Source: Klebsormidium nitens
Lineage: Eukaryota; Plantae; Klebsormidiophyceae
DNA: 64,000 bases
Direction of reading: 5' to 3'
Assembly: GCA_000708835.1 (NCBI GenBank)
Contig: DF237183.1
Coordinates: forward strand, 62,001 to 126,000
Translations under genes and position numbers: made by a program
Notes under the pieces: model-generated
The model's input: the letters and a program-made list of their open reading frames with translations, nothing else
The model's database searches: none
Told to the model about the DNA's origin: nothing
In this document: in pieces, positions 24,859-30,208 of the stretch
Layout: every line of letters starts with the position of its first letter
Numbering within the stretch: position 1 is the stretch's first letter

Positions 24859-25365
24859 GACGCGCCCTCGTGCGGCGCCGCCCCGGCTTTCGACCGCGGA
24901 TTGCTCGAGCTCATTCGCGAGCCTTATAGGGTTCTCCGGAAAACAATCAGAGCTTATCACTTGCGAGTGGTCTCGTTTTCCGGTTCCTTCTTCTCCTTTC
25001 CGAGTATGATTCAATCTCGCTTCGCAGGACGCGCCCTCGTCGCCGACATTCGACCGCGAGTTGCCCGAGCTTACAAGCAAACTCCAGCTCAACCTCCGAA
25101 AAGCAATCAGAGCCCATTGTTCGCGAACTATCTCGTTTTGCGGCTTTACTTTCTCCTCTCCGAGTCTGATCGATCATCTCCTCGCAGGACCCTCTCTCGT
25201 CGCCGACGTTCGACCGCGAGTTGCACAAGCTCATAAGCGGACTCTAAATAAGTTGCTCCAGAAACCTTCAGAGCCCACTATCGTTACGTTCCCCTTTCCG
25301 ATTATCGTTTCTTTGCAGGACCCTCCCTCATCGCCGACGTTCGACCGCGAGTTGCACGAGCTCCT
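24859..25365 (+). repeat. Four tandem copies of the PAS-exon acceptor plus first ~45 nt (three decayed, the last functional)
   Basis: A GAC-x-CCC-TCG-TCG-CCG-ACG-TTC-GAC-CGC-GAG-TTG-like unit starts at 24859, 25028, 25188 and 25319 (periods 169, 160, 131). Copies 2-4 follow a pyrimidine tract and cag; copy 1 has lost the AG. Confidence 0.9.
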
Positions 25366-28300
25366 CGACGCGGCGCCGGACGGGATTGTGATCATGAAAC
25401 TAGACGGGCGGATCGAGCTCGCGAATCTGCAGCTGCGCACGTCGTTTGGATACGAAGAGAAAGAGCTGCTGGGGCAGGAAATCGAGATCCTGATTCCGGA
25501 ACGGAGCCACACGTACCACCGCGCGAAGCGGCAGGAGTACGTGCAGTCCCCGCAGAACCGGCCCATGGGCGAAGGAACGGAACTCTCCGGGTACGGAACG
25601 GAAAGTATTGTTAGGCTTTTTGTTGATGGAGATCGATCCCGGGCCCTATCAAAACAGATTTCTAAATCCAGGGTTGATATGTACCGCACCCGTAACTACC
25701 CCGAACCCCCGAAACAACCGTACCCGTCCGCAGGGCATGACCTATAAACATAGCCGTGGTTTGAACGTTAACGGAAATGATCATGCGCGCACGCCTCACG
25801 TTGACACCGCGCCTTGCTTGCTTCTCACGAACCACTGCAGCAGTGTCGAGAGCGCCATACTTACAAAACGTCCAATTTCCTGTGTTGAGCATGCTTCTGA
25901 ACGTTTGAGTTTAGATTGGAGAGCATGTGGGCATGAGGCGGCTGGCCCAGTCGACCGGAACGGATTTCGATGCGCAGGTGGCGTGACCGGTATTCATAAT
26001 GCACGTGATGTCTGGAACATAGAACAAACATGCAAGCGTCCCAAGCTTCAGGGTGCATATGATATTCCGGTCGTCTGTCTGCAGGCGGCGGAAGAACGGA
26101 ACGGAGCTGCCGGTGGAGATCAGTCTGAGCCCGCTCAAGTTCAAGGACCGGCGCTACGTCATCGCGATCGTGCGCGACATCACCAGCCGCAAAATCACGG
26201 AGTCCGCTCTCACGTAAGGGAGGGCACATCGGGCTGTGAATCGGACGAAAGATGTGATCCGTAAGCTTTCACGAGGCGAAAGAAACTTGTCTGGATGACG
26301 TTCGCCCGTTGAAATCCTGCCAACTGGTGGCCGGTTGTGTTTGTTGGAGTGACAGCACAGTTGCGCGGTTCGCGCTCATTTGAGGGCTATTCAGGGGGCC
26401 AACGAAAGGGGTGACCTGTAAGATTGTGCTCGCGACGGCCGCCTGAGAACCTGCCGAACCGTTTCGGTCTTTATTTCTCGACTGTAGTGCTCAACTGGTG
26501 CCGTGCCTTTCCAGCCAATCCGTTTTTGAGAGTCTGGCAAAGACAAAGATCCCTTGTGTCGGCTCTGTGTCGACTCTTGAAGTGCGACGTTCTGATTTTT
26601 CGACAGACTTCTTCAGTTCCAAGGGACTCTTCACAGTCTCGTTTGCCAAACGTACATTCGCGAACCCTCTTCAATCCGTAGCATCAGAACGCCCCTCTCG
26701 TGCGCTCACCCTTCTGTTCCTGCCTCCCCGCAGCGCGTCGCAGGCCAAGTCGCAGTTTCTGAGCAACATGAGCCACGAGATCCGCACGCCGCTCAACGGC
26801 GTCATCGGCATGGCGGAGCTGCTGCAGCTGACGCCGCTCGATGCGCAGCAGGAGGAGTACGTGCGCGCCATCCAACGGTCCAGGTGAGTCTCCATCTCCG
26901 ATCAAGTTGAGCCAGGTTGAGTACACACAACAATTGGGAGGACGCACAAACTTGAAACTCAGCTACAAACTGACGTGCTCCGCACCCACGTTTACCGTGA
27001 ACCACCCAAAGTACCCAAACCAAACCCCAACTTTTCCCGGGCACTGTCACCACAAACTACACCCCCGTTCTCAAATCTGCTTCATAGGACTTCCGTCAGC
27101 AGATTGTACTTTTCTTTATGTAGCATCTGGTTCGAACACACCAGAACGTCCGCTCCCTATGGAACTTCTGCTAGAACGGCTTACTAGAACAGGGGGTTGG
27201 TTTTCTAGTGTCTATCAACCTGGCTGTATTCCAAACCTGAAAGCAATACTACTGCAATCCAGCGAGTCGCTGCTGCTACTGATCAACGACATTCTGGACG
27301 TGACCAAGATCGAGGCGGGCAAGTACGAGATCCGCCCCGCGCCCTGCGACCTCGCCACCTTGCTCGAGGACGTGCGCTCGTACCTCGCGGCCGTGCTCGC
27401 CACGGACCCCGACCGTGACGTCACCTTTGAGGTGAGGGAACGTCACTTTCATAGCCAGCCACGTCATGGTCTCTTTGAGTTTGGAGCGTGATCTTGATTG
27501 CTGCGTGTTTGCACTTGGGCAGCAGGCCGAGAGCTGTCATGAGAAATTCGAGGCGTCTCTAGCGAAGCGCAAATAGGTCAGCGATATCGAGACTCATCAG
27601 GACTGTAACCCGAAGCCAGGCCCCGCCTCTGATCTGGCAGCTTCAAAATCAGACACTCAAGCCGAATTTCTCGGAGCCAACTGGAACATGCTGAATGTAA
27701 GCGGGATGAGACAAGCCAAGTGTAGCCTTCAAGGGATTGCTAGTCAACAGCAGCGCATCTGAGCAGATAGACAAGTAAGTCAATGGCTTATGGGCATTCA
27801 AGAGGGAATAGAATAGACTTCTCAACCAGGTTACAAACACAAGTGCGCAGCGTGAGCCCGCCGCTACTGCAAAGGAATTGACAAATACCACTCTGCAAAT
27901 CTGCGGTGGAGCTCGTTATCGACACCAAAACCCTGGAATGGGGCTGACGTAGCCCTACAATCAACACATACCACCCTCGACATCTGCGAGAGCGTAGAAC
28001 CACTCGAAAATCTGGGATGGGTGTAAGCTTAATATCGTCCGAGAAAGGTTTCGTAACACGTCACCCCCGCCTTAACCACCCTAACCCGTCTCCTAACCCC
28101 CGGTTATCAGGTGCAATCGGTGGGGCCGTTCCCGGTGGTGGCGGACAAGAACCGGCTGCGGCAGGTGCTGTTCAACCTGGCGAGCAACGCCGTCAAGTTT
28201 ACGCGCGCGGGCTGCATCCGCGTCACCATGGAAGTCCTGGCGGAAACCCCCGAGAGCGCGCGCGTCAAGATCGCGGTCAGCGATACGGGAATTGGGATCA

Positions 28301-30208
28301 AGAAGAGCGACTGGGGGCGCATCTTCCGGACGTTCTCCCAGCTGGATTCCGCGGACAACCGCGAGTACAGCGGAACCGGACTCGGGCTGGTGATCTGCAA
28401 GAGTCTGGTGGAGATGATGGGCGGCGAGATCGGGTTCGAGAGCGCGGCCGGCCGCGGCTCGACGTTCTGGTTCACGTCGCTCGCGAGCCGCGACCCCAAA
28501 GCCCTGAAACCCGCGCGCGAGGCGGACGAGCCGGAGCGCGTCGGCGCGCCGCCGCGCGGCCGCGGGTTGGAGATCCTCGTCGTCGAAGACAACGCGATCA
28601 ACCTGAAGATCATTACGAAGATGCTCGAGGGAATGAACATGCACGTCGACGTGGCGATCAACGGGATCCAAGGCGTGGAGGCGGCGAAAAGAAAGGAGTA
28701 CGATCTGATCTTCATGGATCTGAACATGCCCAAAATGGACGGTTACCAGACGACGCGCGAGGTGCGCAAGAGCGGCGCGGAGTGCCCCATCATCGCATTC
28801 ACCGCGAGCGTGTTCGAAGAGGACGTCGTGCGCTGCATCGAAGCGGGCATGGACGACCACCTGGGTAAGGAAAAACGACGGCGGCAGATCGTCTCTAGGT
28901 TGCTAACCTCTTAGCAAAGCGTTGTGCGCTATATCAAAGGGTGCCTAGTCGACCATCTGAGTCAGCAGGACCGCGGCGGCAATCTGAAATTGTTTGCCTC
29001 AAACTTGCCACTTCAAGTTTCGGTTTCAGAGCGTGGTTGGCAATCTTGAGCCGTCGATCGGACATTCCAAGATCCAAACATTCGTAACTTTCCGATAACA
29101 AGTTTGGCGCAAGGATCTCTAGGTTCAGCTTTAGTAAGCCCCACTCTTTTGACGCGGGCTTGACGATCTATCACCTCTGTGGGATAGAAACGACGGCTGC
29201 TCCTCTTTCTGCCCTCGTACTGGTTTGTTCTCCGAATAGCCAACTCCGACGATCATCTCCGAAAGGAAACGACAGTGTCGTTTGTTAGTTTTCTCTTGCT
29301 TAAGTCAAGTACGGAACCGGGCAAAGACAACCAAAACAACGTCGCCTGCTTCTCTTTGATTTGACGTCTGATCACCCCATCCTTTTTAGAGCGGCCAGAC
29401 AAGTCGGCAATTCTGAAGTCAGGAACTAACCGCATCGGTGCCAAGCCTCGTGGTCTCTTGTATCAAAGTCCCGCAACCTGGACTTGATCCTCGACCACAT
29501 TGATTTCCAGTTTCCGTCTAACAAAACTCCGCTGTCAGACACATATGCCAAGTTTCTTGAAACGGATGGCTCTACAAAATGGCCCCCAATTTACAGGCCG
29601 GGTGGCTTGCGTATCGCGTTTAAAAATTAGCTCATGTAGCAAACTAGCAACTCAACGTCTACCAACCCAATCGCGCGAGATTGGCGTCCCTGTATTCAAT
29701 ATTTTAAGTTGAAACTGTACATCAAGCAGGGTCCCATCGATCTTCCCACCCGAAACAAGCTTCTTGGATTGAGTATCAAGGCGGCGGTGGGCTTGGAATA
29801 TGAATGCAACAAGCGGGAGTGGCCGAGTTGCAGAGCATTCTCAGGACCATTCTTGTGACGGTACCGCTTTACTTGACGTAATCCTTCGACGTTCTTGCAA
29901 TCGGGAGTGTCAGCGCATTGACAGCCAGCGCGACGGCTGCTTTCTCTGCAAGCGAAGAGGAAGAATAAGAAGCGGTGGTAACTGATAAGCCTCAGCTTAG
30001 ACGCACCTAATCTCAGCCCCAAAACCGCGCACCTCTACCCACCCTTATCCCCCAAAACCTCACCCGTCCTAGTGCGCTTACCTTATCTTTTTCGTCTCTT
30101 CCAAACTGAAGGATCTTGAGTTGTTTCTCCTCTTTGCTCGCAGGCAAGCCCATGACGACGCTCGCCCTGAAGGCCATCTTGAACAAGTGGCTGCCCAAGA
30201 GCCCCTAG
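25319..30208 (+). CDS. Hybrid histidine kinase: PAS/PAC (FixL-like), HisKA, HATPase_c, receiver
   Basis: Exons 25319-25590, 26085-26213, 26734-26883, 27263-27431, 28111-28864 and 30144-30208 are frame-consistent. Motifs: [10 protein letters not shown]...RPMGEG...[17 protein letters not shown]...VRDIT (PAS), [10 protein letters not shown] (H box), [39 protein letters not shown]. No TM segment seen. Confidence 0.95.

Follow-up and report, generated by a model that had tools for sequence, protein, structure and literature searches.

Judged by its sequence, the single PAS domain of GAQ85420.1 (a putative soluble hybrid histidine kinase from the streptophyte alga Klebsormidium nitens) is closest to the PAS domains of heme-binding sensors, and the reading that we favour, with moderate confidence, is that heme b would be bound there on His272 and that Met288 would be its sixth, displaceable ligand, in a switch similar to those of DosP and FG214 by which redox state or a gas would act on the kinase. 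The gene lies in a stretch of 64 kb of the K. nitens contig DF237183.1 (62,001-126,000), hereafter the window, whose numbering is used for all positions. From the comparisons presented below we infer the binding of heme, which residue is the sixth ligand, what kind of signal is sensed, and which way the regulation runs.

The PAS domain and its putative heme pocket

When residues 206-340 of GAQ85420.1 were compared by phmmer with all the sequences of the Protein Data Bank (PDB), the matches were RmFixL (E 1.9e-16), FG214 (10jx, E 4.1e-15; an entry whose title names a heme-binding PAS domain of a one-component transcription factor), and BjFixL (E 3.7e-14), followed by MmoS, which carries flavin-adenine dinucleotide (FAD; E 1.9e-7), DosP (E 1e-5), and LOV (E 4e-5). 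The three nearest solved PAS sequences are all heme-b sensors, and the next class falls at 1e-7 or weaker, a gap of about eight orders of magnitude. The PAS domains that bind FAD or flavin mononucleotide (FMN) gave no close match, MmoS and LOV being far weaker than the heme PAS domains, which comparison is one of E-values, the flavin motifs not having been checked residue by residue nor a flavin-PAS signature directly searched. The HMMER alignments to FixL and 10jx ran gapless across 112-123 residues; and among the NCBIfam models the best after the generic sensory_box was sens_FixL_Rhizob (3e-17), over the heme-PAS segment of that model. The AlphaFold2 models of the PAS domains of GAQ85420.1 and of a metagenomic relative (L001, described below) were confident PAS folds with respective pLDDT scores of 88 and 91.5, the FG loop being the lowest part, and the top structural neighbour was RmFixL, with a Z of 16.9 and a root-mean-square deviation of 2.2 Å over 116 residues.

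Residue by residue (the BjFixL numbers being in agreement with the printed alignments), His200 of BjFixL corresponds to His272 and Tyr207 to Tyr279; elsewhere in that pocket Tyr203 is replaced by Lys275, Arg206 by Glu278, His214 by Arg286, Ile215 by Pro287, Ile216 by Met288, and Arg220 by Thr292, with GEGTEL in place of GIGRIV. Two of these, Arg206 and His214, are propionate-binding positions in FixL, the latter of which is likewise an arginine in RmFixL. A preliminary description of this DNA had already drawn attention to the gapless alignment with FixL, the retention of the heme-ligating histidine, and the loss of the distal arginine, all of which we find: the HMMER alignments lack gaps with BjFixL and RmFixL alike, His272 stands in the proximal-His column, and Thr292 occupies the arginine position. 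The check by hidden Markov models (HMMs) that it had advised placed the heme PAS domains first in phmmer and, after the generic sensory_box model, in NCBIfam, and the structural check that it had also advised returned a PAS fold with RmFixL at the top, though with LOV and ligand-free PAS domains only 1-2 Z units behind. Its label of a FixL-like domain holds for the nearest sensors, among which RmFixL ranks highest, but not for the FG loop, whose features are those of FG214 and the S-box proteins.

For that loop FG214 appears to be the better template. His156, Arg160, Tyr163, Arg170, and Met172 of FG214 correspond to His272, Arg276, Tyr279, Arg286, and Met288, whereas its His159 and His175 are replaced by Lys275 and Gly291. 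In the FG214 PAS domain, heme b has His156 as the proximal ligand and, when ferric, His175 as the distal one; His156-Met172 ligation was found in dithionite-soaked crystals, and mutation of H159 perturbs the heme (bioRxiv 10.64898/2026.03.15.711900). Because this protein, like the majority of the family, lacks the distal histidine of FG214, the sixth ligand is likely to be Met288.

The conservation of these positions was assessed in a set of 150 proteins that contain 367 related PAS copies, the sequences having been chosen for likeness to the query: the proximal-His column held His in 98%, the Met column Met in 92%, the Arg286 column Arg in 95%, and the His175 column Gly in 85%. In an alignment of 78 sequences led by GAQ85420.1 the His, Arg276, the Met, and the Gly that follows it were invariant. 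Klebsormidiophyte-like relatives and chytrid homologues retain both the His and the Met, and the R-x-M-G loop is missing from those PAS domains of the same proteins that belong to other subtypes. With a threshold of E<=1e-3, an exhaustive search with the PAS exon of 90 amino acids gave 32,993 representative clusters, in a ranking by summed score that bacterial multi-PAS proteins filled and in which GAQ85420.1 did not appear. Nearest within the family are bacterial proteins of the "PAS domain S-box" type, which carry 2-12 PAS copies and have outputs of the GGDEF, HisKA, or HisKA_2 kind; their sources are Armatimonadota, Acidobacteriota, and metagenomes. Xing, Gumerov and Zhulin (2023) placed FixL and DosP in one large PAS cluster and predicted heme for those of its members that keep the F-alpha His; the 40% that lack it may differ in specificity (PMC10468136).

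Under the favoured mechanism, the single PAS domain would be a heme-b PAS domain of the FixL/DosP/FG214 branch, binding its heme through the F-alpha His272, with Arg286 probably holding a heme propionate and Met288, in the flexible FG loop, probably acting as a displaceable sixth ligand. A change in the redox state of the iron, or the binding of O2, NO, or CO, would displace Met288 and move the FG loop and the beta-sheet, which movement would be transmitted by the helix running from the DIT motif of the PAS domain straight into helix 1 of the dimerization and histidine-phosphotransfer (DHp) domain, so altering the autophosphorylation of His353. The phosphoryl group would then pass from His353 to the fused receiver, at Asp648, and from there to a separate histidine-containing phosphotransfer (HPt) protein and a response regulator.

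The principal rival, to which we grant an appreciable but lesser probability, is that the PAS domain contains no heme. In that circumstance it would be a ligand-free dimerization or regulatory module, or the binder of some other small molecule; the His, Arg, and Met would be structural or serve a different ligand; and the kinase would answer some cytosolic cue. Several findings favour such a domain or weigh against the heme-switch mechanism. LOV and ligand-free PAS domains came within 1-2 units of FixL, at a Z of about 15, and therefore the fold does not discriminate between cofactors. Of the residues of the FixL pocket, half are changed (Tyr203, Arg206, Ile215, and Arg220 having become Lys, Glu, Pro, and Thr), as are two residues that affect the heme in FG214, namely His159 and the distal His175. 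The conservation figures, moreover, reflect the manner in which the sequences were selected; and the family is enormous, with up to 12 copies per protein—an abundance and multiplicity unusual for a cofactor-loaded domain—and with a handful of members tested, so that some or many of them may not bind heme. To this may be added the possible difference in specificity within the His-less portion of the FixL/DosP cluster. On the opposite side, a domain free of heme must be reconciled with three closest solved sequences that are heme-b PAS domains, with the wide gap in E-value that separates these from the next class and leaves MmoS and LOV far behind, and with a family in which the proximal His and the iron-ligating Met are conserved to the extent given above.

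That the protein would be a classical FixL-type O2 sensor, with a five-coordinate heme on the proximal His, a readout through the FG loop, and a kinase turned off by O2, we consider improbable. RmFixL is indeed the best single PDB match, the alignment is gapless with the proximal His kept, and the position of BjFixL His214 holds the same Arg as in RmFixL; but the O2-switch residues Arg220 and Arg206 are gone, Pro287 and Met288 stand in the place of the isoleucine pair, and a Met at this position of the loop ligates the iron in reduced FG214, which precedent predicts six-coordination. Since the loop matches that of the FG214/S-box family, with its iron-ligating Met, a His/Met six-coordinate switch is likelier than a five-coordinate O2 sensor.

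Least probable of all is membership of the PHK group, typified by the moss PHK1 and PHK2, which regulate development under the control of light and have no known cofactor: non-phytochrome PAS histidine kinases occur in K. nitens, in bryophytes, and in zygnematophytes (PMC6137987, PMC13730384), but Pfam recognizes one PAS domain in GAQ85420.1 versus two in the PHKs, a family HMM run on all stop-to-stop fragments revealed no second PAS exon in the window, and the best 120 full-length relatives—from a search that scored the 8000 candidates sharing most words—were bacterial or chytrid and included no land-plant or other streptophyte protein, nor any of the five PAS-PAS kinases of K. nitens tied by Ryo et al. 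to moss PHK1/2.

The kinase and its gene

In GAQ85420.1, Pfam delimits a PAS domain (216-332), HisKA (343-408), HATPase_c (457-567), and REC (600-709), the last three with whole-protein E-values of 1.7e-23, 9e-28, and 1.7e-27 (Response_reg), and finds in the full protein of 717 amino acids neither a domain within residues 1-215 nor a CHASE, GAF, or PHY domain; the N-terminus before the PAS domain is disordered. The highest Kyte-Doolittle mean over 19 residues is just 1.29, within the ATPase domain, and consequently the protein has no transmembrane helix and should be soluble. The kinase boxes are intact: His353 in the H-box, Asn471 in the N box, DTGIGI (503-508; D503-x-G-x-G507) in G1, FRTFSQ in the F box, and GTGLGL (533-538; G533-x-G-x-G537) in G2. 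So, too, are the residues of the receiver, with the acidic pair Glu604/Asp605, the phosphoacceptor Asp648, Thr676, and Lys698. By the NCBIfam models the kinase core is most like hybrid kinases of the BarA/TorS/ArcB type. The protein is thus predicted to be a soluble, cytosolic hybrid histidine kinase of the HisKA type with a fused receiver. The preliminary description had anticipated such a kinase in a streptophyte alga, here matched at 100% to GAQ85420.1; its statements that all catalytic residues of the HisKA, HATPase, and REC domains are present, that CHASE, GAF, phytochrome, and transmembrane regions are missing, and that the protein is not a cytokinin, ethylene, or phytochrome receptor of the land-plant type agree with these results.

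The gene (product GAQ85420.1/A0A1Y1I3B1) occupies 21284-30208 of the plus strand in ten exons (Table 1), to which the protein maps at 100%, each codon agreeing with the corresponding residue. In the database it is named [quoted passage not shown]. The interval originally proposed, 25319-30208, begins and ends correctly at the first base of exon 5 and the last base of the stop codon, and comprises exons 5-10, but it omitted the four exons upstream; nor had the preliminary description recognized that the gene was previously annotated and that heme had been predicted in bulk for such PAS domains (PMC10468136). The annotated ten-exon model, which maps perfectly, was preferred to a provisional start at a Met at 23740.

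Transcript evidence came from contigs of four transcriptome-like runs, belonging to three studies, placed on 24450-30400. The splice joints 25590/26085, 26213/26734, 26883/27263, 27431/28111, and 28864/30144 were found in every run, and all five of those introns are GT..AG. Upstream of 25316 the contig sequence matches 23980-24006, from which we conclude that splicing joins the exon at 25319 to one upstream that ends at 24009, this 3' end of exon 4 being the only portion of exons 1-4 with transcript support. The contigs reach about 1 kb upstream of exon 5 versus 615 nucleotides (nt) of annotated coding sequence, which extent fits a 5' untranslated region (UTR) of some 400 nt. The locus is accordingly an expressed and previously annotated K. 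nitens gene. Contigs of low depth also run through introns, one of them being placed on the opposite strand, and may represent unspliced precursor or a carry-over of DNA in the runs. Intron 2, as annotated, has a GC..AG boundary.

The acceptor site of exon 5, together with about the first 50 nt of that exon, exists in four tandem copies, as detected by the repeat search and by BLAST of the intron against itself; three of these are extra copies inside intron 4, with spacings of about 160, 160, and 131 nt and identities of 73-88%. The three CAG|GAC decoy acceptors in intron 4 encode near-copies of the start of exon 5, and the last acceptor copy alone is used by the high-depth transcript contigs. 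BLAST of the introns against the window for introner-like repeats gave only this tandem duplication of intron 4.

The 3' UTR contains a tandem repeat with a unit of 31 nt in 3.5 copies, found by Tandem Repeats Finder (TRF), across which all four transcript assemblies have a joint that goes back 50 positions with 12 extra letters, indicating that the copy number differs from that of the genome assembly. Elsewhere in the window, an open reading frame (ORF) on the minus strand starts with MGQCLSHED, of the N-myristoylation type, and continues with the glycine loop of a protein kinase (GRGQFGVTY...VAVK); probably it represents exon 1 of a kinase like the calcium-dependent protein kinases (CDPKs).

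Table 1. Exons and other features of the window, and metagenomic loci of relatives (window positions unless a locus is named).
Feature	Position	Strand	Content	Evidence
Exon 1	21284-21487	+	Residues 1-68, annotated start codon, no domain; GT..AG donor	Exact mapping of GAQ85420.1
Exon 2	22159-22317	+	Residues 69-121, low complexity; next intron GC..AG	Mapping of GAQ85420.1
Intron 2	22318-23106	+	GCAAGC...TTGCAG	Annotation
Exon 3	23107-23226	+	Residues 122-161	Mapping of GAQ85420.1
Exon 4	23878-24009	+	Residues 162-205; 3' end joined to 25319 in transcripts	Mapping of GAQ85420.1
Tandem acceptor copies	24883-25370	+	Acceptor site and start of exon 5	Repeat search, intron self-BLAST
Exon 5	25319-25590	+	N-terminal two thirds of PAS including F-alpha; His272 (25517-25519), Met288 (25565-25567), Thr292 (25577-25579), also Arg286	Pfam PAS/PAS_9, PDB alignments, spliced contigs; codon check of residues
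Exon 6	26085-26213	+	C-terminal third of PAS (G-beta to I-beta, DIT motif, start of linker helix)	PAS_9 positions 68-102, spliced contigs
Exon 7	26734-26883	+	DHp helix 1, H-box; His353 (26774-26776)	Pfam HisKA 7e-16, spliced contigs
Exon 8	27263-27431	+	DHp helix 2 and linker to ATPase domain	HisKA positions 42-66, spliced contigs
Exon 9	28111-28864	+	HATPase_c (N, G1, F, G2) and receiver; Glu604/Asp605, Asp648 (28717-28719), Thr676	HATPase_c 1.7e-28, Response_reg 1.1e-27
Exon 10	30144-30208	+	Receiver end (Lys698) and TAG stop	28864/30144 joint in 4/4 runs
Low-depth contigs	24450-25345, 26184-26763, 26854-27234, 28898-30172		Run through introns	k-mer depth 3-14 versus 40-120 for spliced contigs
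3' UTR tandem repeat	30351-30460	+	31-nt unit	TRF
Kinase-like ORF	14402-14746	-	Probable first exon of CDPK-like kinase	Sequence motifs
Relative L001	L001:6233-8588		Relative of GAQ85420.1	JGI metagenomes 3300060284 and 3300060285 (L001-L003)
Relative L002	L002:4868-6723		Relative of GAQ85420.1	As for L001
Relative L003	L003:3771-5626		Relative of GAQ85420.1	As for L001

Relatives, origin, and introns

Among the candidates scored in the full-length search, the best relative from PAS to REC was a protein of the chytrid Phlyctochytrium arcticum, with 46% identity in an alignment covering 74% of the query; next came bacterial or metagenomic PAS S-box hybrid kinases with 33-46%. A word search with exon 9, covering proteins of 138-439 amino acids, gave exon-sized metagenomic ORFs and, through these, the loci L001-L003. 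The uninterrupted ORF of L001, which spans the PAS domain, HisKA, and part of HATPase_c, retrieved GAQ85420.1 when used as query; and its named matches from PAS to HATPase_c were in Leptospira, Burkholderiales, and the chytrid Rhizophlyctis rosea, at 42-44%. The two chytrids are the closest named eukaryotic homologues, with 44-46% identity and the same His...R-x-M-G motif in the PAS domain, and one chytrid PAS domain has an Arg in the column of FixL Arg220. These relationships fit a putative bacterial-type gene that was acquired or retained in the klebsormidiophytes, and they are compatible with a bacterial origin followed by a gain of introns, which the preliminary description had put forward as a possibility.

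At the protein level L001 is 81% identical to the K. nitens kinase, and L002 and L003 are 63-69% identical. The coding DNA of L001, 75-89% identical to that of K. nitens, is colinear with it through the sites of five K. nitens introns; in L001 and L002/L003, on the other hand, there is one shared intron between the F box and the G2 box of HATPase_c, at which point K. nitens has none. Comparison of the window with L001 and L002 for synteny aligned the coding exons alone, the flanks failing to align, so that the relatives may be orthologues or paralogues. Either a processed copy gave rise to the relatives and an intron was gained afterwards, or the K. nitens gene gained its introns recently. The H-box of L002/L003 is degenerate (NHKIRTELNG), and these two loci may be decaying genes or pseudogenes.

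Significance and comparison with known systems

To our knowledge, plants sense O2 and NO by the N-degron (PCO/ERF-VII) route and not by heme-based two-component sensors. If the mechanism favoured here were true, the early streptophytes would also have possessed a gas or redox phosphorelay in the bacterial style, Klebsormidium being an alga that serves as a model for the move to land, and a eukaryotic member would be added to the recently recognized group of FG214/DosP-like His/Met heme-PAS domains, for which GAQ85420.1 offers a small, soluble, and readily expressed test case. A broader proposition, which we regard as speculative and rather doubtful, is that of a working heme-based redox or gas phosphorelay in a streptophyte, built on a bacterial S-box kinase that the klebsormidiophytes gained from bacteria—the chytrids doing so separately or jointly—and that introns then colonized at positions that are not the same in close relatives; extended further, the entire abundant S-box PAS family with the His...R-x-M-G motif would consist of His/Met heme-b sensors. 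These prospects are tempered by the prior annotation of the gene, by the PAS histidine kinases already known in K. nitens, and by the heme predicted in bulk for FixL/DosP-type domains with an F-alpha His. Both the gene and the kind of sensor being known, what is new is a specific and testable candidate, the assignment of a His/Met heme sensor in a streptophyte alga.

Of the named systems, FG214 of Fimbriimonas ginsengisoli (PDB 10JX/10JY; Armatimonadota) belongs to the same PAS subfamily, with a gapless alignment (E 4e-15), the shared pocket residues listed above, and an RxMGE loop in both proteins. It is bacterial, and differs in its ferric distal ligand His175, in His159, and in its output, which is a helix-turn-helix domain with a monomer-dimer switch instead of a hybrid kinase. 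FixL from Sinorhizobium meliloti and from Bradyrhizobium japonicum (PDB 1D06, 1DRM, and others) is the best or near-best match in sequence and structure, with the heme PAS domain immediately upstream of a histidine kinase and the proximal-His column conserved; its heme, nevertheless, is five-coordinate, its Arg220, Arg206, Ile215/216, and Tyr203 have the replacements already described, and the classical protein is without the fused receiver that GAQ85420.1 carries. Hybrid FixL proteins with a receiver do exist in Rhizobium leguminosarum and R. etli.

In the DosP of Escherichia coli (EcDOS) the ferrous heme is six-coordinate with His and Met, and the Met of the FG loop is displaced by O2, CO, or NO. 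The mechanism that we propose is that of DosP, whose sequence match is detectable at 1e-5; the similarity, however, is much weaker, the His-to-Met spacing is 18 residues there versus 16 here, and the output is a cyclic di-GMP phosphodiesterase. In the chlorophyte—not streptophyte—Chlamydomonas reinhardtii, FXL1 and FXL5, a precedent in a green alga, reportedly possess FixL-like PAS domains that bind heme and O2 (Murthy et al., FEBS Lett, 2012); these proteins are not known to be hybrid histidine kinases, which comparison is one of architecture.

The heme criterion of Xing, Gumerov and Zhulin for their cluster 3, an F-alpha His in FixL/DosP-like PAS domains linked to kinases or cyclases, describes the features present in GAQ85420.1, although their data set is mostly bacterial and the comparison is by that criterion and not by looking up membership of the cluster (PMC10468136). 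The PHK1 and PHK2 of Physcomitrium and their streptophyte homologues are likewise soluble non-phytochrome kinases of the PAS-HK-REC type, of unknown cofactor, and are confined to early-diverging streptophytes, K. nitens included (PMC6137987); whereas those proteins carry two PAS domains, GAQ85420.1 has a single one.

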